Notes: a model not told the origin generated them from the letters alone. DNA of 64,000 nucleotides from Entomortierella parvispora E1425 (GCA_020891255.1 BQFW01000004.1:620001-684000), one strand, 5' to 3'; counted from the first letter of the stretch, positions 1-58,479 are shown. Made by a program: numbers and translations.

Positions 1-3000
1 TCTTCGACCATCGTTCTGCTGGAGGCTGTGGATGCTTTCAAAAGTGTGCGAACCTACACCCCTCTATCATGCGCGTCGTGTACACCTGTCTATACTGCCA
101 CACCCTCTCCTACCGCGGAATTATCTTTGAATCCTATCGCCAAGTTCCGGGATCATAAAAGGGCTCGACATACCAAAGACAAGGGCATTGTCAATGTTGT
201 GGTTGGAAAGAAATGCATCAGAGAAAGATGGTACGTTGAATTGATATTGAGACACTGCTCTGAGCCCCCAGCACATCTTACTAATCCGCCAATTGTAACA
301 ACCTTAGCGAGATCGTACTCCGAGGACTTGTGAAGGCCGCCGCACAGACAGCCTTTGACACGGCCATGAAAGGCAAGATTGCGTGCCCGCCCGACCTGTC
401 TTTATTGATGGAGCAGAAGTTTCCAGCCTTAGAGAAGAGGGAACTGGGGCGCAATCGGGTTCCGCCACACATTGTTCAGGAAGCTGTGCGGGATATGGAG
501 CTTAAGACTGGCCAGCCCGTGGGATCTGTTACGACTCAAGCCTTTAAAGCCAGACTCTGCGAAGAGAACTCTGACTTTTCATCGATAAAAGTATATTTGG
601 AAACTGCCGAAGAGAAACTTCGACAGATTTGGGACGGTTATGTGCTGGAACACCAACACAATGGCACTCAGGCATCCGTTGTAGCCCCAGCAAGCACCTC
701 ATCGTCCCCCTCATCAGGCAGCATTCAGAACTCTGAACCATCAAAGGAGGGAGCCGACGAGGAGCAAGAGCTGCGTATGTGCGATGTATCCCTTGGAAAG
801 ATCCTCCGGCCAGGAATGTACAAAGAAGCTGAAAGGATACTTACGGACAAGCAGACAAGAGTCTCCAACTATATCGACGAAGTGCAAGTTGCACTCCGGA
901 AAGCGGCAATAGTGGTAAGAGACTGGCGGCTTGCTCTATTATCTCGTCATGTTACTTATTGGTTTATTTCTTTGCTTGACCAAACTATAGACATGTCAGG
1001 GACTTTTGCACACGCAGTCGGAAAACGTCGATTTGAAGTCGTTCCTTCCGAAAGATTTTAAAATAAGGGATCTTTCTCTCGAGAAGAACCCGGTCGTATC
1101 GATAGGAATTGTCTCCAGCACTTTTATGACAAAGTTTGTGAAGACAAAAGACCACGACAGCGATATCGACTCCGACCTCCTCAACCTCTTTGATCAGGCA
1201 ACCATCCAACATCTTTCTTCGAGACTTATTTCAACAGCCTCGGCTTCCGAGCCCCCGCCCAAAAAGCAAAAGCTGGACAGTGGGGATATTGCTCCTGCTG
1301 ATGATGAAAATGACGAGGAGGAAGATAACCAGGAAGATGATGGAGACGACAATACTGAGGTCAAGGATGTCGGTGGTGCAAAGACCAGTAAGGGAAGGGT
1401 CCATCCAGCTTGGGACACATTGGCGTCTATTGTACAGCAAACCACAACCACCACCATCGACCACACTAAAGCGCCGCAAGGGATGGGCCAGGTGAAAAAC
1501 GAGATGATCCGGACCATGGCGACAAATATGAAAAACATTTGGAGCGGGGACATTTATGGTCACGTCAAGAAGGCAGTCGTTCGATACCTTGTCAGGATCC
1601 ATCTTCGCCCTTTGAGTGAGAAGTGGTTTAGAGAGTATAAACAAAAAATGGCCGAAGAAAAGAGAAAGGAAGCCAAGCGACGAAAGTCGATACCAAGATC
1701 CAGACACAAACAGGCGAGAAGGAGGCATCGCAGCCTGCTGAATCAGCTTGACCACACAATCCACAAGTGTGAACTGCACTGGTCAGGATCGACACTCTAC
1801 GTGCGGGATCAGGAGTCTGAAGCTACCGATGTGGAAGTCGAACATCCTTCGCTTTCCGACGGCATGGTCTCTTTGACCCCAAGCTCCCGTGTCTCTAGAG
1901 TCCAGAAGCTGCTCTATTTGATCGGGAACGGACCACTTCCTTTCAACGCCGAGTCAGCTGCTGCTCCCACCGAGGGAGGCCACGATCTCTTGGACGCAGA
2001 GGGGATCGACGACCAGGACGATGAGGTTGGCTTTGAGTTAGATGGGATCGACTGCCAGGAGGAAGATGGCAGTGGGGCAGACGAGTTCTACGACCAGGAC
2101 GATGAGGATGGCTTCGACGAAGTTGTTGCTGAGTTGGAGGTCAGTGAGACAGTAAACGAGCAACAGGCCAAGCAAGGTACAGTGATGGTGTGTGGCCACT
2201 GCATTTGTACTCGGTGAGTAGAGTATTAACACGTTCATTCATCTCATGATAGCGCGAAAAGCTGAGCCTACATCGAAGCACGTGAAGGGGTTGGAAGTAG
2301 TCATTTGCAAACTGCTGGACCTGTCAGAAGCGGATCTTCCGACCGTGATCACGGACGATGACTTCCACGCTTACTTGTTCACGGGCCACAAGTTCCTGCA
2401 TGACGAGATCAAAGTTGCGGCAGGAATTGTCAACCTGCTTCGCCCATTTGCCCCGAGGAAAGACAAATCTGGCCATATTCCACGGCACATACTGGCAACG
2501 GGACCATTCGTCTACTTGGCAAATCTACTTTTACGAGCAATGGGATTTCAAGATTTCACCAGAGAGATTTCTCCCATCTCGTCTGCGGGTAGCATCCATG
2601 CCATTCCTTTAGGATCGATAGGATTGACACAAGTCCTATGTTGTCCTGACAAGGGACACTTTGACGTCCACAGCCAGCGAGGAGAGTTACTTTCCAAACC
2701 AGAGCTAGCAGTCGATCATTCCTCTCTGATCTTTGCCGCGTTCTTCAAAATGGAAACAGTAAATTCCATTTGCAAAGCACATGGACTCGAGTTTGCGAAC
2801 AGGTAAGCGATGCAGAGGTGGTGAAGAGAGGCATGGTACATACAGAGCATTTTTTTCTAACGCACCTCATTTTCTATCGAACTTTAAAACGATCGTAGGA
2901 TGATGTTTGTTGACCACCAGACTGTACGGATCCTGGGGCGTAAAACAAAACTAGGCGCACCTTCGGACTTGACGAAAAAGAAAGGAGGCAAAAAGGCTAC

Positions 3001-4843
3001 AAGGAAGAACTGGCAACCATCGGATGCAGACCTCCGACAGTTGAAATTGGAAGAGTCCAAGTTGGACAAGTCTACGGCCAAGGAACGAGCGGCAGAGTTG
3101 GGAGAAGCGATTAAGGACAGCGAAATTGACATGAAGGGTCTAAATCGCCAAGCAGCAAAACTAGAGCTATCGGTTAAAAAATACAAATCAGAACTCCAGC
3201 GGCTCAAAGGAGACGATCACATGGCCGACGAAAGCGCAGAGGTCGAGGACTGTTTGAACAAGGATCGGCAAGAGCTCTACGACATACGACGTCAAATTAT
3301 TCCGCAAAAAGTTGCCCTCAAAAGTTTGCGGCAGAAGAAGTACGACTACGACCGATACAGCAAATCCTCCTTGTCAGCACCGTCAAAAAAGAAGGACAGG
3401 GAGCAACCTGACGCTCCAACTATGACCACCCCAACTTTGAGCCGACCGGGCTGTATGAACAAGACCGAGTCCGTTGATATCAGCACACTTCTACGCGATA
3501 TTGACGCCAATAATGCAGATCCAACGGCACGCAAAGTGCAACTTGTACCGGGGGGAACGGACCCAGGGTCCCACATACTTTTTAACACCGTCCCAGTCCC
3601 AATGGCTTCGCTCATCAAACTTCAGAACAGATTTGAGGTCTTGGCGGATGGAAAGGACCCGGACGATGGACTGCCGTCACTTGAGAGTATGAAGTTCCCT
3701 GATGCGCACCAGACAACCACTCAGCAGCTACGCCACCATGCTGGATTGAATAAGAGGGCAAAGAAACGACGTCGCTTGATTTCATCCAACAGAGCCGTGT
3801 CAGACGCCCATTCTCTGCTGGCCGAGAACTCCATTAAAAAAGCGCATTGCATCCAGGACGTTGAGAAGGCCCAGACAATCCGGAGAGAGACTCGCACGAC
3901 TCTTCAAGGCTTTGAACAGTCAAGAAAAATGAAGAACAGCCGCCGAAGAGGAGAACTCGAGCTGAAACGCACATATGACAGGGCAGCTGCTGAAGAGAGG
4001 AAAGCGTTCGGGAAGCAACCTTGCGGTAAGTCGTGCAACTTGCAACTTTAGTCTTTAGTCTTGATTTTTTTTTTTTTTTTTTTTTGTGAGATACAACGAC
4101 AGACGACATCGTACTAATTGCAAACTTTTCTGAAAATAGGTGAAGATGCGTTCACGAAAAAGCTAGAGAAGAACGGACAGTGCACCTCTTGCAATACACA
4201 CCACCGACCCGAGCTTGTCCCAGATCCACAAGACCCCTCCAAACGTCGCCTAGTCCTGAAGCACGTTACCGATTGTCCGAAGACCAAGCCCAGAGTAATA
4301 CCCTTGTTCTTACACGGCGCCGCTGGTTCTGGCATAGGCTCCCGTCTGAAGGGTCGCGCTAAAATGGGTGGTAGTAAAATCCCTCAGAGGCACATGTGCT
4401 CCTCTCCGGTTTGCAAGACCAACGAACATCTTTCTTCACAGACGTGCCCGCTATGCTTTCAGCTGCTTCGACTTGCAAGAGGGAGACGGTGGCGAAGAGG
4501 CATCCACAAGCTGGTCCGGCTACATGGGGCAGTCGAGTGTTTTAATCCAGATTGTGCTGCATTCAGGCGCGGATACACACAGAGAGGAAGAGACACGAAC
4601 GCATCGATGAACATTGCTTTGGCAGGATTTTCGCTCCTGCTCTCACCAGAACGCCGCCCAATCGCGCCGTTCGACCCACAGGCCCCCGCTTGGGCGTGCC
4701 CAACAACAACAGACACCAGTGCATCACCAGCTGGATACCAAAAACTTTCCCCTCGCATCGAAGCAGATGCCGAAGCGGACGCGGATATCTGTCCGAGTTA
4801 TGTAAGTACTCTAAGATCAAATTGCTTTCTGGCCCTATTATAA
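1..4843 (+). CDS. Fanzor1-like (TnpB/IS200-IS605-derived) RuvC nuclease, intron-containing, 5' end outside window, >=1467 aa
   Basis: Exons <1-230, 308-914, 991-2176, 2253-2802, 2899-4025 and 4140-4843 are joined by GT..AG introns (77, 76, 76, 96, 114 nt), and every junction keeps the frame. Motifs: RuvC-I GGTDPG (D at 3560-3562), GAAGSGIGSRLKG, RuvC-II TNEHLSSQTCPLC (E at 4424-4426), GAVECFNPDC, RuvC-III RDTNASMNIA (D at 4592-4594). This is the motif order of TnpB/Fanzor. Confidence 0.85.
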
Positions 4844-4954
4844 TTGTTAGCCCGAGTTCAAATCGACCCACTTACTTTGTTTACGCTTCCATTTTATGCT
4901 GACAGACACTGTAAGAAGTCACCGAAGTTCATGATTCACCGCGTTTCACCCCGC

Positions 4955-5075
4955 GAATCTCGGGACTCCACTTTGTTATCAGTCGTGTGGGCGGTCTCCG
5001 TCGTTTGACTACCCGGCTGTCGGAGTAGGCTATGTCATACCCCTGTCGAGGGATCAGAAAGGTGGAGGTTGATTC
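4955..5075 (+). ncRNA. Candidate omegaRNA-like structured RNA downstream of the Fanzor-like gene
   Basis: Hand-found closing helix (GAATC 4955-4959 with GATTC 5071-5075; CTCCACTTT 4966-4974 with AAAGGTGGAG 5058-5067) enclosing hairpins at 4981-5010, 5009-5028 and 5041-5052. The position 3' of the ORF matches known TnpB/Fanzor omegaRNAs. There is no expression evidence. Confidence 0.35.
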
Positions 5076-5547
5076 TTTGTGAGCAGCGGACCATGGACTG
5101 GGCACGATCGAATGTGGATCCACTTTTTTTTCTCTTTTGCTCTCTCCGTTCTTTTTGGTGGCGCTAAGCTCGATTTCGAAATGCAAAGAAGGAAGGAAGG
5201 GAGCAAGCAAACAACGCCTGGATCCTGGACCATGAACCAGGTACAGCTTGTTCCAAGAGACGCGTCCTTGTGCGCGTGTGCAACGCATGGCCCCGAGGGA
5301 AAGAGAAAAAGGAGAGACGGAAGCAGCACCATGGACATGTGACCTGTCATCCTTCTTCGGCGAAGCTTTGACACGGTGGCACAAAAAAGCGCCATCTTAA
5401 GAGGATCACTGCGCGATTCACTTTACATTTTCCCACCCTCCCATCACCTCTTCTTCTTCTTCTTCTTCTTCAGCTCATTACTTCTCAACCACACTCCAAT
5501 CACCCTCCACTTACACCTCCACCTTTTCATTCATATACCCTCCCACA

Positions 5548-6396
5548 ATGATTGCCCTTCCTATCAACTTTGGCAAATGGATTGAGGAGCATGCTGACAA
5601 GTTGCAGCCTCCCGTCAACAATTACCTCGTTCAGCGCGGTGACTTCATCATCATGGCCGTCGGTGGACCCAATGCCCGCACTGACTACCATGTCAACGAG
5701 ACTGAGGTACGTGAGAAAAAGTCATAGTTTTTTTTTTTTTTTGCATGCCTCTCATTGTCTCTGTTTGTAGCTTGACACACTTTGGAAAGAATACTGACTT
5801 GGCTCTCTCTTGTTTTTCTGTCTGCTTAGGAATGGTTTTACCAGTACAAGGGCGACATGCTCCTCAAGGTTGTAGACAACGGCGAGTTCAAGGACATCCC
5901 TATCAAGGAAGGAGAGATGTTCCTGTTGCCAGGCAAGTCGGAACTGATATTTCGACTAAACTCTTGTCGCTATCCGTCATGGAATTCACGCTCATCGTTC
6001 CTTCTTTTCATATCTCTCTCCTATCAACATTTGACGTTTAGCCTGCACTCCTCACAACCCTGTCCGCTTTGAGAACACTGTCGGCATTGTCATTGAGAAG
6101 CAAAGACCTGCGGAAGCCTTGGGTAATGTTTCTTCCGAGATACATGGTTTTCATAAAATGCGAATACAGTTTACTAACCTTTCCGTCCTTCCCCTCTCGC
6201 TCTCTTTCTCGCTCTCATCCTCTTCTAAAAAGATCGTCTCCGTTGGTACTGCGACAAGTGCAAGGAGATCGTCTACGAGGAATCTTTCCACTGCGTCGAT
6301 CTTGGCAAGCAGTTGGCGCCCGTCATTAACCGCTACGCATCTGATATCTCGTTGCGCAAGTGCAAGGCCTGCGGTCACACCAACGCTGCGAAGTAG
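5548..6396 (+). CDS. BNA1: 3-hydroxyanthranilate 3,4-dioxygenase (kynurenine pathway)
   Basis: Exons 5548-5706, 5830-5932, 6042-6122, 6233-6396. Translation [65 protein letters not shown] carries the HAAO cupin and rubredoxin-like CxxC motifs. Intron 2 is GC-AG. Confidence 0.97.
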
Positions 6397-40323: not shown

Positions 40324-40512
40324 TGGTCGTGTGGTCACTCGTGGTTGCCGGTGGGAGCTTGCTGTTGTTGGCGATGATAATGCTGTTAATAAGAGGGAGG
40401 GAGAGCGCGAGGTCGATAAAGAGGATGGTGCTTCCAGCCAGCGCTCGAGAAAGGAAGGGATGAGTGAGGGCAGAAAAGAGAACGCTGTGGTCATGGGCAT
40501 GTGGTTTACAGC

Positions 40513-40626
40513 GGAGTGTATCCTCTGGATTGAAGTGTATCCTCTGGATTGAAGTGTATCCTCTGGATTGAAGTGCATCCTCTGGATTGAAGTGTATCCT
40601 CTGGATTGAAGTGTATCCTCTGGATT
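40513..40626. repeat. 19-bp tandem repeat (GAAGTGTATCCTCTGGATT) x6
   Basis: Six head-to-tail units with only two substitutions and no spacers, ~190 nt upstream of the protease ATG. Confidence 0.97.
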
Positions 40627-41482
40627 GGCTTGTGCAATGCTGCACAGTGAGAGAGCTCGGAAGACGACAAAGCAACGGTCGCTGCGAGAAAAGAGATTGT
40701 GACACAACGGAATGGGAGAGAATGGGGAAAGAGATGCAGCCAATGGAGGTGTGGATGCAATGGACAGAAGAAAGGACTGCCAGCCCATGTCTCTCCTCCT
40801 CACTCTTGGCTTGGCTCTCTCTTCTATCTCTGCCATTGCATTCGAGAGCGTCTCCCTCCCTCTTATCTCTCTCCGCGCATCGTCGGTCGACCAAAGGCAA
40901 AAGAAAAGAAAAAAAAAAAAAAGGTGTCTTACTGTACGTCCAAGACGCGTCTCTGCCCGCGTGTCACGGCCGCGTCTCTGTGCCAAAGAGACCCCTATAG
41001 TCATTGCTACCCTACTCTGTGTAGGAGCTCACCTACTTTATGTGTTTCCACGCTGTTGTGGCCCCACTCAATCCTGGTTCAATAATGTTTATGGATGGAT
41101 GCCCCTTTCTATTGCTCTCTTCCATCGCTAAACTCATGACCAGACAGGCACGCATCTCCCTTTGCTCTCCGTGAAGAGCCATAGCTCCGTGTCATTTCCA
41201 CGTAACCTTTGCTCTCGCCCCTGTCCAAGATCATATCGGATATGCACTGCTATGTAGCTAGCTGTATAACCGTCATTGCCGTCATTTTTTTCTTTGGGGT
41301 AACGAGCTCAACGCATCGGTCATTCTTTTTGACAACAGCGGGTCGGCTATCATTAAGGGTATACATTTTTTTTATTGCAACTTTGATCTTTCTACATACT
41401 GCGGTCTAAAGCGCCTAGTAAATAAAGAAGTGGAGTGCGAGACCAAACTATCTACAACCTGAGCAAAGCCGCGTGGTCGTCG

Positions 41483-44308: not shown

Positions 44309-45887
44309 TCTTATTTTTTTTTGCTTTACTCTGTCAAAGGTCTCGTAGGCAACACTGATGTTCATTCTCGATCAAGAGGCGACATACAGTTGAAAGACAG
44401 GCGGAGGAGGATATGGCCCCACTCCCTGATGGGTTTGCGCCTGTGGTATACTCCCCGGGTTGAGGTGCCAGTAGATCAGGAATCGAGGGGGAAGTGGAAG
44501 GAAGATAATCGGGGTGGAGTAAGACCAGCATGGTCAATGGGCCGATTTTTTTTTTGTCCAATTTTTTTTTCTCCTGACATTCACACTTTCACTCTCGCAC
44601 AAACTCCCCCCAAAACACCACACAACCCTGCTGCTGGCGCCCCTCCTTTCTGAGGCTCTGCTCGGGCTTCCACCCTTCGCGCGAAGACTACTTTCTGGAC
44701 TCGGTTCAGGCTGACGTCTTCACTTGCGCTATGCGTAAAGATTGCTGGGGGGCACTTAGCTCGTGCTGACGCACTCACGTTGATTTGCTAAGTAGCGGGG
44801 AGAAGAGAACAATGAAAAAAAAATCGATTGGTAGCGGCAACGCATGGTTGAGATAAGCAGAGCTGTAGACGCTAGGATCGTAGACGCTTTTTTGCAGGTA
44901 GATCGAGTATGAAAAGGTCATGGTTGGAGGATACCAAGGTCGGAGGAGAACTAGTCTATCAATAATTAGGGGTTGGCTGGACAATGGCGCGTCAGAACAG
45001 GCCCACCGCATGGCCGGTTCTGGTGACATCCCTATGTTTGTACGTACTACAGCATCGGCCTAGTTTATATCTATCTCCTACAAAATTTCAGGTACTCTGT
45101 TGATCATGTCCTATTTGGTGTTTGTCTGCCTACCAAGACTATGGGCATTCTCATGGAACACCACTGGACAAAAGCTCGAAGCAGTCGCACTCTTCATGTA
45201 GCTTGATGGCACTTTTTTTTTTTTTTTTTTTTTTTTGGCAAAGGACCCCCGAGGGGATGCCCGATGGACTGTGGCGGCCTACCTGCCAGATAGCTCTCCA
45301 GTTGCGCACATTCCAGATCCAAACTGTGATCCAGTCCAACAAACGACTCGATCGGAGAGAATAATAGAGGAGTTTGGGAATCGGTTTTGCCACCAAACGT
45401 GTGATAAAATTTTTCCTGTCTTGAAGAGGTGACCAAAAAGATTTTTCTTCTTTCACTTTTTCTTTCCCAAGCCCTTCTTCATCCTCCCTTCGCTCTCTCG
45501 TTATTCACTATTCACCTCATACCACCTCGCCGACAGTTGCCACCACGATGACTGCAGCACCCTTATTTGCTTGACTTTTTTTTTTTTTTTTTGCGGTCGT
45601 CCATCCCCCATTGTTGTATCGACACTCCCAGTCCAGCTCCTTTTTGACAAGAAACCCCTGGCAAGGTGCCCCACCACCACTCCTTGTTCATCACTACCTC
45701 TTCAACAGCACACTTCCAGAGCTTTTCCTGGTCCACCCAAGTCCACCTGGGTCCATCTGCCACATTCTGATACCTTTGACAATTGCTTTGTTGTTCGGTT
45801 GCCTGTTGTTCGGTTGCCTGGTCAACTGGGTCGGGTCAAGTGCCCAGTTGACCTAGTGGACCCACCGACAGGAAGCTCAGCACCTCC

Positions 45888-45927
<40 letters not shown>

Positions 45928-45928
45928 A

Positions 45929-46370
45929 CCTCACCACCTCAGTGTTCTTTCAAACTTGCCTACCTGCCTGCAGACGTTTCGCTGTCGACTTGAGAAGAAA
46001 GAAAAAAAGCGATCCCTTCCAGAGTTGTTGTTCTTGCCGACAGTGAGTGGCCTGCCCTCCACCCCACCACCACAGCACCTCTACTCGCTCTCTGTGCCTC
46101 ACCACCTCAGTGTCCTTTCAAACCTTCCTACTTGCCTCTCTGTCTGCAGACGTTTCGCTATCGACTTGTCGACTTGAGAGAAAAAAAGAAAAAAAAAGCG
46201 ATCCCTTCCAGAGTTGTCGTTCTTGCCGACAGTAAAAGGGCTGCCCTCTACCACCCCACCACAGCAGCTCTACTCCCCCTCGGTACCTCACCACCTCAGT
46301 GTCCTTCCAAACCTGCCTACCTACCTCTCTATCTGCAGACGTTTCGCTGTCGACTTGTCGACTTGCCAAA
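45929..46370. repeat. ~170-190 bp degenerate tandem repeat x2.5 inside left arm
   Basis: CCTCACCACCTCAGTG..GACGTTTCGCT(G/A)TCGACTTG units begin at 45929, 46097 and 46286, and are mirrored at ~58001-58425. Confidence 0.85.
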
Positions 46371-46427
46371 AAAAAAAAAAGAAAAAAGCGATCCTTTGCC
46401 TTTCCCCTCGCACAAAAGCAAAAGCAA

Positions 46428-46499
46428 AGGTCGATGCGAGGTTCGAACTCGCGTTGCCTGATTCAAAGTCAGGAGTACTAACCGCTATACTAATCAACC
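46428..46499 (-). tRNA. tRNA-Gln(TTG)
   Basis: Reverse complement of the 53263-53334 tRNA, identical over 72 nt. Confidence 0.93.
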
Positions 46500-47059
46500 A
46501 TTTTTGTTATTGAACTTTCTTTTCAACTTTTTCTATTTGAACTTCCGTGCCTGTGTTTGCACGTGATTTCATCTTGAGAAAACCAAAGTTGTCCCTGCAT
46601 TTTTGCATTTTGCACCTCCTCGGCGCCTGCGCTGCATCTTCGGGATAGTCACGGATCGATGGATCACCGTCAATTGCCATGGGTATGTTCGAAAAGGTCT
46701 TGGTCGTCGGTAGAGAAGGTAAGCATGAAAAAGATGTGTTTTTTTCCTTTTTTTTTTGATATCACACACGAACAAGCTACAGAATTTGCTGCGCGGGATA
46801 TCAGCAGCACGACTAGACTCGGACACCATCGAAATGTCAGTCTTTGGGCACTTTTATTGAACAGTTTACTTTTACTCCTACAATTGCGAATAAATGCTGT
46901 TAAGGACGAATTAAAGAAAATTATAGTAAAAAAATCAGTGAGTCATGGTCGTGGTAGAGGACTCGGCAGTGCTAGAATCAGCTTGGTGGGTCCACTAGGT
47001 CATGGGGTGAGGTAGAAATCAACACGTTGGCTCGGGGTATCGCGACTGGCAATCGCTGC

Positions 47060-47093
<34 letters not shown>

Positions 47094-47865
47094 CCGGCAT
47101 CGCGGTCATGGCTGGGCAGAAAAATCCGATCCATCTCTGTGGAATATCCTCTTTTTTTTGACGATATTTCCCATGTACAAGCCAGGGGAAGAATCAAAGC
47201 CGGATTACTAGAATGCTCCTGCAGCGAATGTATTCTGGTATGTCCTCAAGTAAAGTGAAAGACCGATATGATTGAGGTAGACCCGCATCTGGGACGCAAT
47301 GGTGACACACATCTTGAAGCAGGGTGCCATTTTATCAGCGGTGGAATCCAAAAAAAAAAAGTGAAGAGCTGTCATCAATCAATCTGAACGTAGAATGACA
47401 ACGAGTTGAACTTTTTTGAATCTGTGATATGAACGATTTAGGAGTTACGGGTAGAAGACTGTGTTGACTGAGAAGGAGTCTTATATTTGGAGCTGCTTGA
47501 TCAAACCGTCTGTTGTTTTCCTCTGTTCGGGAAAAGATGCTTTCTGTGCGTCTCCCGGCACAATTAGCAGACTCTCCAGTAAAGGCGATGGATTTTGAAA
47601 CTTGCATCACGAATTATCTTTGATAAAGCTAACCCGATGAAGTTTGAAGGGAGGTGAAAGGAATCAGCTGGCATTGAGCGATCGCTCAACAAAGAGAGTC
47701 AAAAATTATATCGAGCAAAATCAAGAAGTGTTGATTGTCATGCTCTTTGTTGAAGGCGCAATTGCAACGTACCAGACTAAGTAGACGCATTATGTATGAT
47801 GGAGGCCTCATAAAGATCATTTATTTGTAGACTGATATTGAAACTCTATAACGGTTTGTCATTAC

Positions 47866-50805
47866 TCACGAAATCAGAATGTTGCACTCTTCGCCTCTTT
47901 TGAACCTGTTCAGTTCTTCGTTAGAGACTTTCCACCTCAGGAGCGCCTTCTTGTTATCATTCCCAGATTTACTTTTCTTGTCCCTCTGTGCAGCCAACAC
48001 CCAGTAGCGCCGTGCGAGTTCCACAGGAAGATCAAAAATAGAAGTCATGTAAACGCGTTCGAATCTGGCCGATGTGCTTTCGTTGGGAAGCGAGCACGTA
48101 TGTGTTGGCGTTTTGAGCGCACCATTTGCGCCACAGTTCGGGAGGAAAGGCCTGCGATAGACGCATTGACGCGGCTTGTTACCACATTTCGCCAAAATAA
48201 TGGGCCACTGGCTTCGCCATTCGTGAGTGATGTATTTTATCATGAAGTCGATCTTGTATGAGTTCACCCAGCGGGTGTCGTTAGGACGAGAGTCGCTATC
48301 CACCTTGAAGCTGCACCGGACATGAGTCTCCAGATATCGATCCAATGCCATGATGATCAAGAATTCCGGGCTTGTGTCGTCGGTGTAATCATTGGAAGGG
48401 GCAGCCATAATCTTGATCCGGTTGGGAATCCATGGGCATCCCACCACAATATTCGAGGCCATTTCCAACTTCCATCCGCCAGCAGCTGTCACATGATCGT
48501 GGTCTTTGTCTGACAGGAGATCAAAGATGTTGTGGGCGTAATACAGCGGCTTCAGGTCGCAAATGTCGATGAGCTTGGCCTTTTCCCCCGTTGTTTCGTG
48601 GCAGTGGTGAGTGGTTTCAAGGCCTCCGATTTCCTCCCTGTCGCAGCCGCGGCATGTGGCGTGGAAATAATAGCTCGTGTTATACTGATCCCTACAGTAC
48701 TGGTCCATGTTGGCGACGGCACACTTGATACTATCCAAGGAGAACCCTGAACGCTCAACCCCGAACCTCTTGTTCCTGGTTATAAAGTCTTGAAGTGCGT
48801 CGGGATTGTTGACAAAATGCTGGGTGCCGTACGAGCGAGCGGACATGGACAAGTATTTGCCCTCCGGGACTTTGACAAACCAGTCTCGATGCTCTGTGCT
48901 ACAAGCCTCTACCGTCGAAGGACAAAACGACTTTAAGTGGTAGATACCCCGATCTTGGCGGTCCTTCAGAAACGTGCGATACTCGTTCCATTGTTCAATG
49001 CGAGCATTGAACTGAGGAGAAAGGTCAGATGGCACCAGTTCAACATTGGCTTGTAACATGGTGTCTGGCACAGGAGCTCCGAGGGCAACGGTCATGTCCC
49101 GCAATGGATAGCCTTTGGTATGGAACTCCTTCTCTGCATTCCTTGCCTTTGATGCATATTGACGTGAGGAAACCAGAGCCAATTGGCAAGCGGCCACCTC
49201 CTTCCGCTTTTCTTCAAACAACTCATGTAAGCTCGGGGAACCGGCAGAACCGGGCTTCTTCCACTCATCTTCGATGAACTGCCTGATTTCTTTCAAATCA
49301 TCAAGGGAACCTAGCAACCCCTTCCAGTCGAGAATGGCATGGCAGGCTGTGATGTACTTTGCCTTGCACAGGTAGTGGAGCTCACAATAAAGAGGAGCCA
49401 GCGAAGGATCATACGCAATATTGCCTGGGTCGCGTTCAGGTAAATGCAGAGCGTAATCTTGGGCCCCGGGGCCATAGCGGATGATAGAGAGGGTGCCGAT
49501 CACATCCATGAAAGCAGGGTGCCTCAGTTCGTCCCATTCGAAAGTATCATCACGCAAGGACTTGATTATATCGGGATCGTCCAGCATAGTTCCGTTAATG
49601 TCCGAGAGTACCTCGCTTGCCCCTGTTACCTGAGCAAGCATGTCTGACTGCAGGATGTTGGCAACCTTGGAAGAATGGCTCACGGCGAGTATGGGGCGTA
49701 GAAGTTGAAGATTCTGACAGAGAAGTGCAGCGGCGACGGCGACATCTTGATGGACTTCTGTAAACTGCCAAAAGTCCAGTCGAGGAATAGAAAGTCCAGG
49801 AATGAGATGACTGCGAATATGATGCTCAGCGCGAGGGGCTCGACCGGCAGTCAAGCTGTTGTAGGCGAAACCTCCCTTCATGGCCTCTAGAGGGATATCC
49901 TTTGAAATCAAGACCGAGAGCACTCGGCCTCTGTCTTTGCAAGTCTGGATGTTTTGGGTGTCCCCGATGATCTCATCCAAAGCTGTATCCGTGACCAAGG
50001 ACTTGGGATCCACTAGTTTTGAAAACACAGCATGGTTGAACTGTTGCTGTTCCTTGATACTGTTTTTCAGGTCGGTATGGGCGGGGGACGTCACCGGTTT
50101 GATCACCGCCAGTGGTGCAGCCTTGGCGAGCAGGGATTCGAGGTCCTTAGAAGGGGTCCAGCGATAAAAGTAGCCACCCGAGGCCGAGTTGAGGCAGTAC
50201 GGAAAGACAGTCGCGATCAGATTTTGCTCAATCTCGTCGTAAATGCTGAGTGCACGGACGTCCGTCTCTTGGTTCACAAGATGGCGGTGCAGTTCATAGA
50301 TCTTTTTTGGGTTTCTGTCGCGGCTAGGGAGGAGGCTCAGCAGGTTCTTGAGGCGACTCCATTTGGGATCCTCCTGGTCGTCTTTGGCGCGGCCTTGTGC
50401 AGTGGATCTGTAGGCCATCCCAACATACGGAATGAGTAGGGTCTTGTCTGGAGATTTATCCAGGATCGCCTGGGCCCACTCTTTGTCTGCGCTGTAGCTA
50501 TCTCTGTACTGCAAGAGTACTGTTCGAGGCACAGAGTAGAGGCGAAGGTAGTATTGAACATAGTCGCCAGAATTGGGTGGCGGCTGTGATTTAGAACAGA
50601 GCTTGAGCGTGGTCTTGGTTTTGGAAATGCTCAAGGGATCCTGAGCAACCTGGAGGAGAGGAGTCCAATTGCCCCGAAAACTTTGGAAAGATTCTTCGAG
50701 GTGGTTGTTAAGAGTTCGGAGAGACTGACGGGTGCGACCAGCATTAATGTGGAAAAGCAGATCCGATCCAGTATCCAAAGGAGCCGAGGATGAACTGGAG
50801 GACAT
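47866..50805 (-). CDS. Intronless 979-aa protein with GIY-YIG-like N-terminal motifs, a UDG-fold-like central segment and Cys/His-rich C-terminus
   Basis: Open 2.94-kb frame from ATG 50805 (MSSSSSSAPLDTG). Motifs YYLRLY..IPYVGMA..GRA..DEIEQNLIA..CLNSASGG, VLISKDIP..AG..LDFW..LRPILAVSHS, CRGC..THHC and CG..THTC. The CDS is well supported; the domain calls are pattern inference. Confidence 0.75.
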   Translation of the reverse strand: MSSSSSSAPLDTGSDLLFHINAGRTRQSLRTLNNHLEESFQSFRGNWTPLLQVAQDPLSISKTKTTLKLCSKSQPPPNSGDYVQYYLRLYSVPRTVLLQYRDSYSADKEWAQAILDKSPDKTLLIPYVGMAYRSTAQGRAKDDQEDPKWSRLKNLLSLLPSRDRNPKKIYELHRHLVNQETDVRALSIYDEIEQNLIATVFPYCLNSASGGYFYRWTPSKDLESLLAKAAPLAVIKPVTSPAHTDLKNSIKEQQQFNHAVFSKLVDPKSLVTDTALDEIIGDTQNIQTCKDRGRVLSVLISKDIPLEAMKGGFAYNSLTAGRAPRAEHHIRSHLIPGLSIPRLDFWQFTEVHQDVAVAAALLCQNLQLLRPILAVSHSSKVANILQSDMLAQVTGASEVLSDINGTMLDDPDIIKSLRDDTFEWDELRHPAFMDVIGTLSIIRYGPGAQDYALHLPERDPGNIAYDPSLAPLYCELHYLCKAKYITACHAILDWKGLLGSLDDLKEIRQFIEDEWKKPGSAGSPSLHELFEEKRKEVAACQLALVSSRQYASKARNAEKEFHTKGYPLRDMTVALGAPVPDTMLQANVELVPSDLSPQFNARIEQWNEYRTFLKDRQDRGIYHLKSFCPSTVEACSTEHRDWFVKVPEGKYLSMSARSYGTQHFVNNPDALQDFITRNKRFGVERSGFSLDSIKCAVANMDQYCRDQYNTSYYFHATCRGCDREEIGGLETTHHCHETTGEKAKLIDICDLKPLYYAHNIFDLLSDKDHDHVTAAGGWKLEMASNIVVGCPWIPNRIKIMAAPSNDYTDDTSPEFLIIMALDRYLETHVRCSFKVDSDSRPNDTRWVNSYKIDFMIKYITHEWRSQWPIILAKCGNKPRQCVYRRPFLPNCGANGALKTPTHTCSLPNESTSARFERVYMTSIFDLPVELARRYWVLAAQRDKKSKSGNDNKKALLRWKVSNEELNRFKRGEECNILIS

Positions 50806-52601
50806 TATTTTGGGAATGATAGCGCGGGAACGGAGCTGAGAAGACTGGGTGAGTCGTACTGCAAAAGCAAATAGCAGAAAAAACAGCAAATAGCAGAAAA
50901 AACAGCAAAAATTTGTGAGGATCAGTACTATGTATATTTTTTCAACGCTGAGAGGCAGATGGAGATTGCAAACGAAGTAAAGGCCAATACTTACGAGCAA
51001 GATATGATGAAGTAAGAGCTGACGCGAAATGTCGTTTGACTTTGCGAAGGATGAACCTAGTACTCGATGCCGTAGAATCAGAGGGTGGTACGTGGTTCCA
51101 AGGCGAAAGGCAAGTAGCCAAACGATCCAGGGGCGAGTAAGGAAAGAGTAGGGGCAGGTGGAGAGAACAATAGAAATAACAGTGAATGAAGCGAACAATG
51201 GGTTGAGAGAACAGTGGGCAACTGGAGGGAACGGTAGGTAGAGAGAACGGTGGGTAGAGAGAACAGTAGGCGAAGAGAACAGGGGGTGGGTGAGAAGGTG
51301 AAGGAACAAGAGATCTGGTTTGAAAACGGGAGGGTACTGAAGGTGCTTTTATCTTCATGACCCGGCGCAGAAGAGAGTGGTGGACAAAAACGAAAGCGAA
51401 AACTTGTGGATACACGCTTTTTTGTTTGATCAAAGACAGTTGCATGCGCACAGTTGATTGTCCCGATACAGATCGGGCAATCAGGCAGATACCGCAAAGC
51501 GTCGAAGCGACCGTTGCGCATCCGAGCGCCACTATTATTATCATTTCGTTCTGGGGGGTACACACTTTTAGTGTGGCAAAGTTCCGACAACATGGGAACA
51601 TGGGAGAAAAGGCAGAGCAAACAAAGAGACGCGCCTGCAGTCGTAGTGGCGGTGATGTCCACGCGCGAGAGATGCGTGCATGCACGAAATCTGAAAATGG
51701 GTGGCTTGTATTTGAACATGTTGGCATGTTGGATAGAATCACTCGGACAAAGAGCATGTTTATTGTGATGCTTGTGAGGCCATAGCTAGGCCGTTTCTGG
51801 GAAAAACAACGACAGGGTAGTACCACAGCTATCAGAAGGGGACATGGTGGTGAAAATATCAGCTACAGATGGCAATAGCTACCTTTGGGTCATTTTTTTT
51901 TATATTGTCCACAACTGGTACCGAAGGAATTTCCATAGTGGACAACTGTGACACAGCTGACGAGACATCACCTGGCCAAACAACTCCAGGGAACGCTTGG
52001 CCTGCATATGTGGTGTCCAGATTGGGTGATAAAGGATGGAGACCGACTGTATTCTCATGTTCGATTTCAATCGCTCCACGCAACAAGAGGGACGCGAGGG
52101 ATTGTCGCGTCGATTGTTGCTGATAAGAGGTCAAAGAGAGGAAGGAGGGAGATCAAAGGAAATGATCACCCACTTTTGTACAGAGCAGAGAATAGCTGAC
52201 ACGAAAATAGACAACAGGCACGTCGATCGAGATGAGAGGATCAGTACGCGCGCGTTGCCCAATTTTGCCTAGGATCTTTGCCTGAGCACATTGGACGGAC
52301 GCCTCAAATCCCGACCGACTGCTGTCCACGCCTGCGACACTGGTCATACAGGGGTTCCGCTATCGATGGTGACACCCCTGCACTCATCTGTAGGTCCATC
52401 TCACTGCCAAATCCGACCGTAGGAACGCTCGCCTTCCGTCCAATTCTATCTCCTCTGACTCGCCATCCACGTTCATAGCTGGTTACTTTGTAGTATAGAC
52501 CTTGCCATATCCTAGTTGGCCCTCACACTATACCATTAAAACCTATGTCCCCAAACTCCATTGTTTGACCGTGCCAGTCTGAAGGGGGAAAAAAAAAAGA
52601 A

Positions 52602-52667
52602 AAAAAAAAGAGGATATTCCACAGAGATGGATCGGATTTTTCTGCCCAGCCATGACCGCGATGCCGG

Positions 52668-52703
<36 letters not shown>

Positions 52704-53392
52704 GCAGCGATTGCCAGTCGCGATACCCCGAGCCAACGTGTTGATTTCTACCTCACCCCATGACCTAGTGGACCCACCAAGCTGATTCTAGCACTGCCGA
52801 GTCCTCTACCACGACCATGACTCACTGATTTTTTTACTATAATTTTCTTTAATTCGTCCTTAACAGCATTTATTCGCAATTGTAGGAGTAAAAGTAAACT
52901 GTTCAATAAAAGTGCCCAAAGACTGACATTTCGATGGTGTCCGAGTCTAGTCGTGCTGCTGATATCCCGCGCAGCAAATTCTGTAGCTTGTTCGTGTGTG
53001 ATATCAAAAAAAAAAGGAAAAAACACATCTTTTTCATGCTTACCTTCTCTACCGACGACCAAGACCTTTTCGAACATACCCATGGCAATTGACGGTGATC
53101 CATCGATCCGTGACTATCCCGAAGATGCAGCGCAGGCGCCGAGGAGGTGCAAAATGCAAAAATGCAGGGACAACTTTGGTTTTCTCAAGATGAAATCACG
53201 TGCAAACACAGGCACGGAAGTTCAAATAGAAAAAGTTGAAAAGAAAGTTCAATAACAAAAATGGTTGATTAGTATAGCGGTTAGTACTCCTGACTTTGAA
53301 TCAGGCAACGCGAGTTCGAACCTCGCATCGACCTTTGCTTTTGCTTTTGTGCGAGGGGAAAGGCAAAGGATCGCTTTTTTCTTTTTTTTTTT
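52602..53392. repeat. Right arm, inner part, of large inverted repeat
   Basis: Near-identical reverse complement of 46381-47159, differing mainly in homopolymer lengths. Confidence 0.95.
53263..53334 (+). tRNA. tRNA-Gln(TTG)
   Basis: Acceptor stem GGTTGAT/ATCGACC, anticodon arm CCTGA-CTTTGAA-TCAGG, T-arm GCGAG-TTCGAAC-CTCGC, followed by T-rich terminator-like runs. Confidence 0.93.
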
Positions 53393-53530
53393 GGGTTTAT
53401 CTATTTGACAACCCAGGTTGTTCGTTTTACCTGACAACCCACTCTATATTTGGTTAGTCTCGTTTTTTATTCGGCAACCCACCTGTCATTCCTCAATTGA
53501 CAACCCAGGTTGCCAAACAAACGTTTATTT

Positions 53531-54743
53531 TTATGAGTGCTGTCTAGAATTGTGACCTTCCCCGCTGCACACTCCACACTTCGTTGATTTTTTTTTTGTC
53601 TCCATGCTGCTCTTTATCCGAGAAGTCCTCGGTCTGCCCTTCGTCTTTGTATAGTGAGGATCCTTCATACCTTCTTCGCCTGCCCCCCTCACAATGACAC
53701 GGTTTAGGCCATCTTTAACTGTTTCGAATACTTCTGGATTGGAGTTCACGGTGTCCATGATATTCTTCATCAGGCCAGATATCTCTCCAATGCGGCGTTT
53801 TTTGGAAAGGTTGCGTTTATCAACCCCCGACAGGGATGGCACTGAGGGGAAAACCTTCATGATATCGCTCATGAAAGAAGAAGCAGGCTCTCCCTCTGCA
53901 CTCCCCACCTGAGCGACCGTCTTCTGCGTTTTTGCGCTCAAAAACGCCCCTGAGAGATCAAGATCTGTTAGGTCCTGCAGTTCTTCTTTAAACCACCGCA
54001 TCGGAATAAGCCTGACATGATACTTGCATCTGTCACTAACTTGCATCAGATGGAAATAGTGTCGACATACAAATCCGCTGTTTTGGAGGAGGAGGCAAGT
54101 ACAAATGTACGAGCCATCAGCCAGTAAAAGTATGTGCTGAAGTGACTTTCGCTCCGTGTCCAAGCGGAACGTCACGTCGAAGATTTGTACAATTCGATCA
54201 GAACCAACGATTGTCTGGATGGACTGGAGAGAGCTCATTTCGCGATTGTCTTTTGACGATCTCTCAATCTAAGGACAAAGAGAAGAATAACGGCTTAGTA
54301 CCTCTATCTGGTCTTAGGATTGCGCTTGGGTATTGGAATGATGTACAAGTACTTACTTCCTCGAAATCACCTCCTTCGATTGATCGTGGAGCACAGGCGT
54401 CTATACCTGTGTGTGGATTGGACTGATACAAAACAGAGCGCGACATCTCTAACTTCATCTGACTTTTTGCTGCGATGCCAAGATAGCGATTGTTTGCATC
54501 GATAACATCGGCAAACATTTGCTGAACAAACATCGACGTTGCGGGATCAACCGTTGTATCCGTCTTGTAGAGAATATACTTTGAAGTCTGGGCTTCATTT
54601 GATAGCTTCTTTTCAATTGCCTCGAACAGTGCTGGAAGGGACGTCTTGCCATTGACGGCCCTTTTGATGGCCGCATTCATACTCTCCACACGCTGAGTCG
54701 ACTGTGGCTGTATTGATCTGCCGTCGGTCAACCCCTCGGTCAA
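53531..54743 (-). pseudogene. C-terminal remnant of MULE/FAR1-type transposase
   Basis: QSTQRVESMNAAIK motif, intron 54356-54269 (GTAAGT..TAG, frame kept), SWIM finger CTC..CRH, RW motif, KGRP and CGVC-GHN knuckle. The DDE core upstream is missing and is replaced by the tandem array. Confidence 0.85.
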
Positions 54744-56039
54744 ATAAAAAAAAAAGCCTTTGCATGCAACAGTAGACCATTCCTAATTGGGACTTCTGGC
54801 GACTCGCAAGGACTCGCAAGACGGTATGTGTACCATGGTCGGCCAAAAGAAAAAAAAAGATCCATTTTGCCTTCTGTATGCATGCAATTGACAGACATCC
54901 CCTAGGTCATAGAGGATGATAGTCCAGTGGGCTCTGACCTTGTCTGAATCAGAAGACTGGAGCGGGTATCAGCTGTGTTTCTTTCCTCTTGTATTGATCT
55001 ACCCCCGGGTCAACCCTCGGTCAAATAAAAAAAAAAATCCTCTGCATGCAAGTAAACCATTCCTAATTGGGACTTCTGGCGACTCGCAAGGACTCGCAAG
55101 ACGGTACGTGTACCATGGTCGGCCAAAAGAAAAAAAAAGATCCATTTTGCCTTCTGTATGCATGCAATTGACAGACATCCCCTAGGTCATAGAGGATGAT
55201 AGTCCAGTGGGCTCTGACCTTGTCCGGTCCGGAAGACTGGAGCGGGTATCAGCTGTGTTTTCTTTCCTCTTGTATTGATCTACCCCCGGTCAACCCTCGG
55301 TCAAATAAAAAAAAAAATCCTCTGCATGCAAGTAAACCATTCCTAATTGGGACTTCTGGCGACTCGCAAGGACTCGCAAGACGGTACGTGTACCATGGTC
55401 GGCCAAAAGAAAAAAAAAGATCCATTTTGCCTTCTGTATGCATGCAATTGACAGACATCCCCTAGGTCATAGAGGATGATAGTCCAGTGGGCTCTGACCT
55501 TGTCCGGTCCGGAAGACTGGAGCGGGTATCAGCTGTGTTTCTTTCCTCTTGTATTGATCTACCCCCGGTCAACCCTCGGTCAAATAAAAAAAAAAACCTC
55601 TGCATGCAACAGTAGACCATTCCTAATTGGGACTTCTGGCGACTCGCAAGGACTCGCAAGACGGTATGTGTACCATGATCGGCCAAAAGAAAAAAAAAGA
55701 TCCATTTTGCCTTCTGTATGCATGCAATTGACAGACATCCCCTAGGTCATAGAGGGTGACAGTCCAGTGGGCTCTGACCTTGTCCGGTCCGGAAGACTGG
55801 AGCGGGTATCAGCTGTTTTCTTTCCTCTTGTATTGATCTATCCCCGGTCAACCCTCGGTCAAATAAAAAAAAAAGCCTTTGCATGCAACAGTAGACCATT
55901 CCTAATTGGGACTTCTGGCGACTCGCAAGGACTCGCAAGACGGTATGTGTACCATGGTCGGCCAAAAGAAAAAAAAGATACAGTTTGCCCTCTGTATGCA
56001 TGCCATTGACAGACATCCCCTAGGTCATAGAGGATGATG
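54708..56039. repeat. 280-bp tandem repeat, ~4.8 copies
   Basis: The anchor CCTAGGTCATAGAGG recurs at 54901, 55181, 55461, 55741 and 56019. Units are highly similar and there are no spacers. Confidence 0.97.
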
Positions 56040-56195
56040 GTCCCACATGTTCTTCTGGTTCGAAACAAAGGGACTGACTCGACTGACTCGTACATCCAGG
56101 CTTCTTGTGTCAGCAACTCCCACATGTATAAATATGTGTACTTGCGGCATCCAGTTCTGTATCTTGTCCTCCTCATCGTTCTCACCTCTTCCAAC

Positions 56196-57047
56196 ATGCC
56201 TCGTGGTGCTTGCACTTACGGCTATTGCGCGCTAGGTCTCCTCCCCCCTGCCGAACCCAAGACCAAAAATCAGAAGAACCATGTTGCAGGGTATCACGTC
56301 GACAACCCCATCAAGTTCATGTGCGGGTACACTGATCGACAAGTCACCTTTAGTCGAATTCCCACAAAACACATGGATTTCGTCTGCTACTGTGGCCTGA
56401 CGTTCACCCTTAACTCTTCGATCCATCGCCATTACCATTACTGTGCCGTTGCCAGGGACGCCGCCCTAAATGCAATCGCACATCCACCTCCTCCTGGTGC
56501 AGGTGGTGCAGGCGATGGCAATGGCGTTATTGTTGCGCCGGCGCCTCCTTCAACGGCCCTGGTGGTAGCGGAGCGCAGCGTCGGGAGCATTCTGGAGGAA
56601 AAGTTGATTGAGCAACATCAAGCCTTCCTGGAGACGTTCACAGGACAGAGCGCGAAGCTCGTCGAGAGCATGACCCAGTCTCAGTTGTCGTTTCTGAACA
56701 CCTTCACCGCTTCGTATGCTGAACAAGCTGTGGCACATCAGCGCAGCATCGCTGAACATAACCGCTTGGCCTTAGAGGAGCAGCGCACGGCCCTCGAGGA
56801 GCAGCGAGCTGCCATTGAGATGCAGCGAGCAGCTGTTGAGGAACAGAGAGTGTTCTACAATCGCCATCAAAACAATCAAGCAGAGATAATGGCCGAGCAG
56901 AAGCTTACAAGGGACGAGGTTAGAAACCTCATGTCACTCAAGCGCGATCGATCTTTCACGTTGGAAGTCAGCGAGCGAGCACTCAAAGGCCTTCAGAGTG
57001 ACCCATCTTACATGGTCAGCCCCTGCCAGGACGACGAGGACATGTGA
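56196..57047 (+). CDS. Hypothetical 283-aa protein inside the MULE (Cys/His finger-like N-terminus, coiled-coil C-terminus)
   Basis: Open frame from ATG 56196 with CYCGLTFTLNSSIHRHYHYC and heptad-like EEQRTALEEQRAAIEMQRAAVEEQR. An AATAAA signal follows the stop. Confidence 0.6.
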   Translation: MPRGACTYGYCALGLLPPAEPKTKNQKNHVAGYHVDNPIKFMCGYTDRQVTFSRIPTKHMDFVCYCGLTFTLNSSIHRHYHYCAVARDAALNAIAHPPPPGAGGAGDGNGVIVAPAPPSTALVVAERSVGSILEEKLIEQHQAFLETFTGQSAKLVESMTQSQLSFLNTFTASYAEQAVAHQRSIAEHNRLALEEQRTALEEQRAAIEMQRAAVEEQRVFYNRHQNNQAEIMAEQKLTRDEVRNLMSLKRDRSFTLEVSERALKGLQSDPSYMVSPCQDDEDM

Positions 57048-57161
57048 AAGACAGATAGTGCGCAATCCCACGTCGACGAAGTGTAACAGGTTATGTTCGC
57101 AATTATTCAATAAAAATATTCTTGCGAAATATCTTCTGATGCTATGGCGGACGCGGTGGAC

Positions 57162-57885: not shown

Positions 57886-57990
57886 TGGAGCTCACTATCT
57901 GACAACCCAGGTTTCCATGCAATTTTCCAAAGTGTGACTGGTGGGTTGTCAAACAAAACGAACAACCTGGGTTGTCAAATAGATAAATCC

Positions 57991-58430: not shown

Positions 58431-58479
<49 letters not shown>

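Follow-up and report, generated by a model that had tools for sequence, protein, structure and literature searches.

A probable Fanzor1 nuclease gene of unusual architecture in a recently multiplied mobile element of Entomortierella parvispora

The stretch of DNA analyzed here, which we call the window, comprises 64,000 nucleotides (nt) of Entomortierella parvispora E1425 (GCA_020891255.1, BQFW01000004.1:620001-684000). It opens inside a giant gene on the plus strand that occupies positions 1 to 4914 and whose product carries, towards its C-terminus, a core resembling the Fanzor1 proteins. Fanzors are, to our knowledge, the only known eukaryotic RNA-guided DNA nucleases, and they are under development as compact genome editors. 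We consider it likely that the gene encodes a real Fanzor1 of unusual architecture, with predicted activity, and that positions 1-4914 are the 3' 4.9 kb of a recently amplified mobile element at least 5.4 kb long. All positions are those of the whole stretch, and protein numbering starts from window base 1. The features of the gene are listed below, where SpuFz1 is a Fanzor1 represented in the Protein Data Bank (PDB), L001 is a metagenomic relative and X2 is a sequencing run.

1-230, plus strand: exon in frame 1, truncated at the window edge; codes for the final strands of the N-terminal alpha/beta domain of the family
231-307, plus strand: intron 1, 77 nt, GTACGT...TTAG, branch ACTAAT
308-914, plus strand: exon; helical part of the N-terminal module; differences between copies at 356, 404 and 833 are synonymous
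915-990, plus strand: intron 2, 76 nt, GTAAGA...ATAG
991-2176, plus strand: exon; conserved HPxWD and ATNxxxxWxGxIY blocks, basic run KRRK...RRR, acidic linker
2177-2252, plus strand: intron 3, 76 nt, GTACAG...ATAG; intron of L001 at the matching place
2253-2802, plus strand: exon; the family-wide conserved core begins here, its SpuFz1-alignable part from about nt 2579
2803-2898, plus strand: intron 4, 96 nt, GTAAGC...GTAG, branch CTAAC
2899-4025, plus strand: exon; long coiled-coil hairpin (REC-like), RuvC-I strand GGTDPG, then a helical insertion before RuvC-II
4026-4139, plus strand: intron 5, 114 nt, GTAAGT...ATAG, branch ACTAAT, poly-T tract; GTAAGT of L001 at the matching place
4140-4801, plus strand: exon; CxxC...H...C knuckle at 4175-4279, glycine-rich RuvC-II strand at 4310-4354, poorly conserved protein tail
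4690-4914, plus strand: candidate omegaRNA scaffold or right-end recognition region, with constraint at the nucleotide and not the codon level
4802-4905, plus strand: intron 6, 104 nt, GTAAGT...CTGACAG, branch CACTTAC; an X2 contig joins 4801 to 4906
4906-4914, plus strand: mini-exon ACACTGTAA; TAA at 4912-4914 is the last triplet of the element and hence its right end

An earlier reading of this locus, made without database searches (the sequence-only reading), had joined the frame open from base 1 and five further open reading frame (ORF) fragments through five introns into one frame. This was borne out: the five-intron model gives 1,467 codons with zero internal stops, its last exon running from 4140 to 4840 before a stop at 4841-4843. 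All five introns are of the GT..AG type with CTAAY/CTRAC-type branch sites, and their donor, branch and acceptor sites are ordinary fungal ones, in agreement with the earlier description of them as host-like. Another donor for intron 3, GTGAGT at 2214, was rejected, because the intron would then measure 39 nt and the next frame would contain a stop. The spliced protein is collinear with Mortierellaceae hypothetical proteins across all junctions (P0005, 40% identity over residues 275-1354), an alignment with P0022 spans residues 1-1411, and the exon at 1-230 aligns with P0022, P0014 and P0151 in the family alignment A3. The metagenomic relatives L001 and L002 show the same run of exon-sized ORFs with candidate GT..AG introns at matching places, some with consensus donors, despite the protein of L001 being only 30-59% identical. 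Between this copy and the dominant sequence of the other copies, taken from contigs of run X1, there are 35 exonic differences, 22 synonymous and 13 non-synonymous, against an expected synonymous share of 34% for random transitions (p = 5e-4). This excess supports the reading frames as well as purifying selection on the protein. Collinearity, synonymous excess and matching introns in L001 together place the five-intron model far beyond a chance splice.

The C-terminus of that model did not stand, since a sixth intron at 4802-4905 moves the stop from 4841-4843 to 4912-4914. Removal of this intron makes the frame end in ...CPSY-TL-stop, with TAA as the final three bases of the element. The joint between 4801 and 4906 was found in a contig of run X2, which comes from the same sample as X1 and whose library type is unrecorded; the contig continues 51 nt past 4914 into a copy-specific flank, and no such joint occurs in the X1 DNA contigs. 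Most simply, X2 would be a transcriptome and the contig a spliced read-out transcript; if X2 is DNA, the contig would be a processed copy, equally implying splicing. A shorter 49-nt intron at 4802-4850 was rejected because L006, a close DNA relative, lacks that acceptor and the X2 contig uses 4905. The donor of intron 6 is kept in L006 and L008. A terminal-intron layout of the same kind was found in seven relatives from several subfamilies (L001, L003, L004, L005, L010, L011 and L012), with GTAAGT lying 83-134 nt from the end and followed by a canonical branch site, AG and a final piece of 7-9 nt placed at the mapped or inferred element end; this piece ends in TAA in most copies and in GAA in L005. 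Since the stop codon precedes the donor in the Linnemannia hyalina subfamily, the intron there is 3' untranslated and its conservation is not explained by coding. From the terminal-intron and TAA layout, the element end at L012 427-7158 (GCA_015502455.1, the locus of P0022) is predicted at L012 5684. The 1,823-amino-acid model of P0022 therefore probably overruns the element end, and its C-terminal extension of about 300 residues is likely an annotation artefact, as judged from this layout.

At the other end, the gene extends upstream of the window, with the start codon, the 5' end and the left element end beyond the window edge. The best model has at least seven exons and about 1,450 residues within the window, or about 1,600 overall. 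A search of the last exon against 1.84 billion representative proteins returned 330 matches with E up to 0.001, including proteins of 1,285-1,823 amino acids, and a word-based protein search returned only close Linnemannia and Mortierella relatives.

The motifs that had led to the assignment of the gene to the TnpB/Fanzor nucleases are all found in the spliced protein where they had been placed. GGTDPG provides D1079 of RuvC-I (nt 3560-3562), followed by the glycine-rich motif LHGAAGSGIGSRLKG; NEHLSSQTCPLC provides E1329 at nt 4424-4426, ECFNPDC lies in the zinc ribbon, and RGRDTNASMNI provides D1385 at nt 4592-4594. The catalytic D-E-D triad is thus complete, and so are the four zinc-ribbon cysteines (nt 4445, 4454, 4538 and 4553), as had been claimed. 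Bao and Jurka (2013) described the Fanzor/TnpB signature D-X(125,275)-[TS][TS]-XX-C4-X(5,50)-RD (PMC3627910). A regular-expression search of the spliced protein finds it as D1079...S1332 S1333 Q T C1336 xx C1339...C1367 xxxx C1372...R1384 D1385. In Fanzors the RuvC-II glutamate is relocated to six residues ahead of the zinc finger (PMC10530073; PMC13565253). Here, E1329 stands six residues before C1336, and the canonical RuvC-II strand, PLFLHGAAG, is without an acidic residue and has a glycine at the canonical position, which places the protein with Fanzors and not with canonical TnpB. Across 70 family sequences, conservation is 90% or higher at the E, at the RD pair and at the cysteines, and the catalytic triad is near-invariant.

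Profile searches with OrfB_IS605 and OrfB_Zn_ribbon had been suggested as a check on this assignment, and they stayed below threshold. OrfB_Zn_ribbon (PF07282, also Cas12f1-like_TNB) scored 17.6 bits against a Pfam cut-off of 26.3, and OrfB_IS605 gave no Pfam match in the exons; six full-length relatives behave alike. We take the sub-threshold scores as a sign of divergence, and they do not contradict the fold result given below. They also make the family invisible to routine annotation. Intron 5 parts RuvC-I from RuvC-II and RuvC-III, placing them on separate exons, the ground on which the gene had been supposed to escape simple ORF calling. In public annotation the family appears as "hypothetical protein" with no domain recorded. 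The sole PDB sequence match to the last exon was SpuFz1 (E 0.018). A 16-sequence family profile gave no gain over the single sequence, with SpuFz1 (E 0.007) second behind a coiled-coil keratin and the rest coiled-coil noise.

For the family assignment the predicted structure is decisive. The AlphaFold model is that of the core of a relative, P0006 (802 residues, about 30% identical to the window core), with a 70-row family alignment as input, and reached a predicted local distance difference test score (pLDDT) of 83.3 and a predicted template modelling score (pTM) of 0.73. In a Foldseek search of the PDB, ranks 1 to 7 are all Fanzor1 proteins (PpFz1, SpuFz1 and GtFz1; E 6e-5 to 5e-3), followed by Cas12 proteins and then by Fanzor2 and Cas12f, with Fanzor2 at rank 15 (E 0.09). 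Alignment of the model with SpuFz1 by VIA-align gave Z 14.8 over 335 residues, model residues 122-762 matching SpuFz1 40-633 and so spanning almost all of the chain in the solved structure; the comparison with SpuFz1 that the sequence-only reading had proposed thus came out in favour of a Fanzor1. Through the family alignment, D403, E677 and D733 of the model correspond to window nt 3560, 4424 and 4592, and its cysteines to 4445/4454/4538/4553, while residue 122 maps the start of the SpuFz1-alignable part to nt 2579, so that the Fanzor1-matching part covers nt 2579-4679. The predicted fold, with its WED, REC, split RuvC and zinc ribbon, is nearest to Fanzor1, and not to Fanzor2 or Cas12, and is carried over to the window protein by this alignment. 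AlphaFold DB clusters contain more uncharacterized relatives and a few named transposase or Cas12f1-like TNB proteins. Based on the model, residues from about 780 to 1410 probably form a Fanzor1-type WED-REC-RuvC-zinc-ribbon nuclease core that is RNA-guided. Together with the signature, the relocated glutamate and the SpuFz1 sequence match, the structure ranking supports the original TnpB/Fanzor assignment.

The gene is carried by a repeat. Contigs of run X1 cover 1-4861 at a word depth of about 315 and the adjoining single-copy DNA at about 73, a ratio of roughly 4.3. The high-depth contigs reach 4914 and then split into different flanks: TCTGCGGACC... after 4914 and GCCAGAAAC... after 4916 in X1, and GAAGTCACC... 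in the window itself, while the X2 contig has a fourth flank after the spliced end, AACAAACC.... These divergent flanks indicate at least four copies, about 99% alike, with a right end at 4914 +/- 2, and nucleotide similarity to L006 stops at about 4912, the same place as the right end. The four known right flanks share no common motif. Upstream, the high-depth repeat runs at least 509 nt beyond window base 1. The element has recently multiplied, and its copies are under purifying selection on the protein.

These copies bear on two other accounts of the gene. One is that a host gene derived from a Fanzor has been domesticated in single copy, to which the host-like introns and the ordinary host genes next to it might point. 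A multi-copy repeat that breaks off sharply at 4914, and whose other copies have other flanks, speaks against this, as do the paralogues of Linnemannia hyalina, which lie in 10-kb mobile elements, and the absence of the gene from three other runs of the same species label; among these, X6 matches only flank pieces from 4930 on, those genomes being too diverged for intergenic alignment. We regard domestication as very improbable. The sequence-only reading had left it open whether the gene is an active or a domesticated programmable nuclease; the first is probable, as a prediction by analogy, and the second finds no support, since the gene is multi-copy and transposon-borne.

The other account is a decaying, non-functional relic whose visible part merely happens still to be open. 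The 5' end lies beyond the window, this copy differs from the others by 13 non-synonymous changes, and the metagenomic relatives L006 and L007 are internally deleted derivatives, all of which could fit decay. It is hard to reconcile, however, with a spliced frame of 4.4 kb free of stops, with catalytic and zinc residues that are all kept, with copies about 99% alike whose differences are enriched for synonymous changes, and with none of the 13 amino-acid changes touching a motif. Decay is therefore an unlikely explanation.

Some side observations concern the copies and relatives of the element. Contigs of X1 join the element from unrelated sequence at 2090 and 3553, and these loose ends may be truncated or rearranged extra copies. 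The closest DNA relatives are L006/L007 and L008/L009 from the JGI metagenomes 3300029943 and 3300030054, which match the last exon of the window's element at 67-73% identity. Internal deletion or degeneration marks L006 and L007 and apparently also L008 and L009, and the same contigs occur in both metagenomes. A metagenome contig search with the last exon found no relative.

If the protein acts like TnpB and the tested Fanzors, a guide RNA would be expected from the 3' end of the element. At third codon positions, the identity between 4690-4914 and L006 is 0.7-0.8, against 0.18-0.59 (mostly about 0.35-0.55) for the RuvC-coding part, which indicates that the constraint over 4690-4914 acts on nucleotides and not on codons. 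Compensatory pairs are few in the consensus folds; a two-sequence fold of this region contains five. The X2 contig that leaves the element for 51 nt of copy-specific flank would also fit a guide RNA read from the flank. Between L. hyalina and L. gamsii, identity over the 150 nt preceding the donor is 86-94%, versus 75% in the 5.2-kb main alignment, and a long hairpin is possible there. A scan of 1-6000 with Rfam gave no match. A scaffold placed at 4955-5075 was rejected, since these positions fall in the single-copy flank past the right end. An omegaRNA encoded here is plausible by analogy with the tested Fanzors, for which a transcript of the element 3' end running 14-15 nt into the non-conserved flank has been described (PMC13565253). 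By the same analogy, a transcript of the 3' end of this element would read out into the flank, its element-derived part would fold as the omegaRNA scaffold and its flank-derived part would serve as the guide. The ribonucleoprotein would then cut element-free target sites, promoting retention or homing of the element. Nuclease activity and RNA-guided cleavage would thus be expected from the likeness to these systems.

A hairpin of about 25 bp is possible at L003 11436-11495 (alignment A7, columns 24-83), within the 100 nt that precede the terminal intron. It is near-invariant in L. hyalina, L. gamsii and Mortierella sp. GBA39, and the encoded tail is not conserved family-wide. This hairpin is a candidate omegaRNA stem for that subfamily.

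The core is preceded by about 750 residues encoded in the window and by some 150-200 more encoded upstream of it, all conserved in blocks family-wide (alignment A3). Reported Fanzors average 620 residues (PMC10530073). No Pfam domain, including XPG/FEN1, was found in this N-terminal half when each exon and six full-length relatives were searched, and an ESM Atlas feature search with the module was uninformative (scores about 0.64). Its structure prediction was poor (pLDDT 65, pTM 0.34); nothing in the PDB matched the model with E < 0.4, and it resembles only other uncharacterized proteins. We conclude from the alignment that the region of about 750 residues is a family-specific conserved module. 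The core itself has insertions: one is a long coiled-coil hairpin, another a CxxC...H...C knuckle that sits between RuvC-I and RuvC-II.

At the family N-terminus (P0022 residues from about 20 to 220), weak but mutually agreeing matches resembling OTU cysteine proteases were seen in three structure libraries: AlphaFold DB (E 0.01), ESM Atlas (template modelling score 0.41-0.44 over about 100 residues) and the PDB (E 0.4-2). This tip lies mostly upstream of window base 1, with window 1-90 encoding its last strands, and in the family alignment the Cys and His normally used for OTU catalysis are not conserved. Since the tip is mostly outside the window and its catalytic residues are apparently unconserved, we treat the resemblance as a lead only.

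A conserved module without assigned function raises another possibility, that the Fanzor fold is no longer an RNA-guided nuclease and serves, for example, as a DNA-binding or regulatory accessory of a Crypton recombinase, with the N-terminal module doing the main job. The omegaRNA is known only as a candidate, and TnpB relatives are described as having repeatedly become non-cutting regulators (PMC10705468). On the other hand, a D-E-D triad near-invariant in 70 family members would be unexpected for a non-catalytic role, and in the 3' terminal region constraint acts on the nucleotides. We judge a non-nuclease role quite unlikely.

The association with Cryptons comes from L. hyalina (GCA_019671135.1), in which L003 1470-11620 and L004 1410-11621 form a 10.15-kb unit, 99.1% identical between the two. 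This unit contains the giant Fanzor gene and an upstream gene on the opposite strand with NDC10_II (E 1.5e-8 and 5.9e-7 for L003 and L004) and GCR1_C (E 1.4e-9) domains. The combination of NDC10_II and GCR1_C is a hallmark of fungal Crypton tyrosine recombinases. In L003 the recombinase gene lies at about 2099-4869 on the minus strand and is missing from public annotation. L005 is a derivative without the recombinase segment and with about 730 additional nt. The three L. hyalina copies share common ends, with neither terminal inverted repeats (TIRs) nor target-site duplications. No recombinase homologue was found in the metagenomic relative L001, whose repeat unit is about 6 kb. The window copy is probably recombinase-less, representing a short form of a Crypton-type element or one mobilized in trans, and it is not classed as an autonomous Crypton because no recombinase is present in the window. 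A link between the window element and a recombinase in its own genome would follow by analogy with L. hyalina. Association of Fanzor1 with Cryptons has already been described (PMC3627910, PMC10711439, PMC13565253).

We therefore favour a real, probably active Fanzor1 in a recently amplified mobile element, and several points weigh against it. The description of the gene as intact applies to no more than the 4.4 kb of coding sequence inside the window, the 5' end lying beyond it. No RNA runs are listed for the organism, and read-level support for splicing comes from one contig of run X2, of unrecorded library type. The matches to Pfam and to PDB sequences are marginal (E 0.004-0.02), so that the sequence evidence taken alone is thin, and the predicted structure belongs to a relative about 30% identical and not to the window's own protein. 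Copy number can be judged only roughly from the depth of assembled contigs. The 64-kb window contains no recombinase homologue, and the upstream part of the element lies beyond it. Finally, the covariation in the candidate omegaRNA region comes from only two to four sequences, and the single-sequence fold of 4600-4930 is not unusually stable (z = -0.45).

Introns, multiple copies and a relocated RuvC-II glutamate have all been reported for Fanzors (PMC10530073), and a fungal, spliced, transposon-borne Fanzor1 is an already known kind and an expected find. Literature searches, of incomplete coverage, found no paper linking Fanzor to Mortierella or Mucoromycota. The gene departs from this known kind in its size, in the conserved N-terminal module, in the core insertions and in the conserved terminal intron that puts the stop or a mini-exon at the element end. 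The closest known systems are SpuFz1 (PDB 8GKH, 9CEU-9CEZ) and PpFz1 (9CF0/9CF1), the best structural matches to the WED/REC/RuvC/zinc-ribbon core of the family. They have the same relocated glutamate six residues ahead of the zinc finger and a "...HG..EC.NP.C" ribbon, and they too are encoded by fungal, transposon-borne, intron-containing genes. In contrast, identity is only 13-20%, the window protein is about 2.5 times longer with about 750 extra conserved N-terminal residues, and the coiled-coil hairpin and the CxxC...H...C knuckle between RuvC-I and RuvC-II belong to the window family. The window element also has a spliceosomal intron within its last 113 nt, and the omegaRNA here is only a candidate.

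The MCi-2 Fanzor1 elements of Mucor circinelloides (PMC3627910) are likewise Mucoromycota Fanzor1 elements tied to a Crypton-type recombinase, without recognizable TIRs and with copies that have or lack the recombinase part. However, MCi-2 has a partial recombinase and 11-12-bp target duplications, whereas the L. hyalina relatives show no duplication and their recombinase is complete (NDC10_II and GCR1_C); the likeness to MCi-2 drawn here is one of features. TnpB of IS200/IS605 elements (e.g. ISDra2), Cas12f and Cas12j share the RuvC-zinc-ribbon core, Cas12j and Cas12f being the next structural matches (Z 11-13), and the expected logic of a guide RNA from the element 3' end and cutting of empty sites would be alike. 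These proteins have the canonical RuvC-II glutamate, unlike the glycine and relocated glutamate seen here, and the present gene differs in its eukaryotic host, its spliceosomal introns and a protein three to four times larger. Unlike for TnpB, the carrier of this family is a tyrosine-recombinase (Crypton) element and not an HUH element.

With at least four copies about 99% alike and purifying selection, the element looks currently or very recently active. Its architecture is unrepresented among solved or tested Fanzors, being about 2.5 times the usual size, with a large conserved N-terminal module and an intron in the stretch from which the guide RNA would be expected to come. The family may serve as a test case for the cooperation of a Fanzor with a tyrosine-recombinase (Crypton) transposon, for the role of added protein mass, and for guide-RNA production alongside spliceosomal splicing. 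One tentative and rather doubtful proposal is that splicing at the 3' end of the element decides between mRNA and guide RNA, which together with the N-terminal module would make the family a distinct Fanzor1 architecture. In one case the product would be an mRNA that acquires its complete stop codon only at the very last bases of the element; in the other it would be a guide RNA, and excising the intron would either put its scaffold together or break it. A conflict between intron and guide RNA has been described for bacterial IStrons, and this would be its spliceosomal equivalent in a eukaryote. The distinct architecture would include the module of about 750 residues, whose tip may hold an inactive OTU-like domain. 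The literature searched on Fanzor, omegaRNA, introns and splicing, the coverage of which was incomplete, describes no spliceosomal intron in the guide region of a Fanzor.

Beyond the element, the window contains the following features.

4915-5547, no strand assigned: single-copy host flank, depth about 73, in a contig with 0 differences; between the element and the 3-hydroxyanthranilate dioxygenase gene
46370-47090 versus 52673-53392, and 45672-45873 versus 58691-58892: inverted-repeat arms
46428-46499, minus strand, and 53263-53334, plus strand: identical tRNA genes in two arms

About 630 nt past the element end, an intron-containing 3-hydroxyanthranilate 3,4-dioxygenase gene lies at 5548-6100 on the plus strand, with a Pfam 3-HAO match in its first exon at 5548-5724 (E 2e-18). 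The inverted-repeat arms, 99-100% complementary, belong to a large nested structure at 45661-58912, within which five tandem copies of a 280-nt unit, 82-100% alike, occur at 54698-56043. A further tandem array, at 40477-40646, consists of about eight copies of the 19-nt unit AGTGTATCCTCTGGATTGA.

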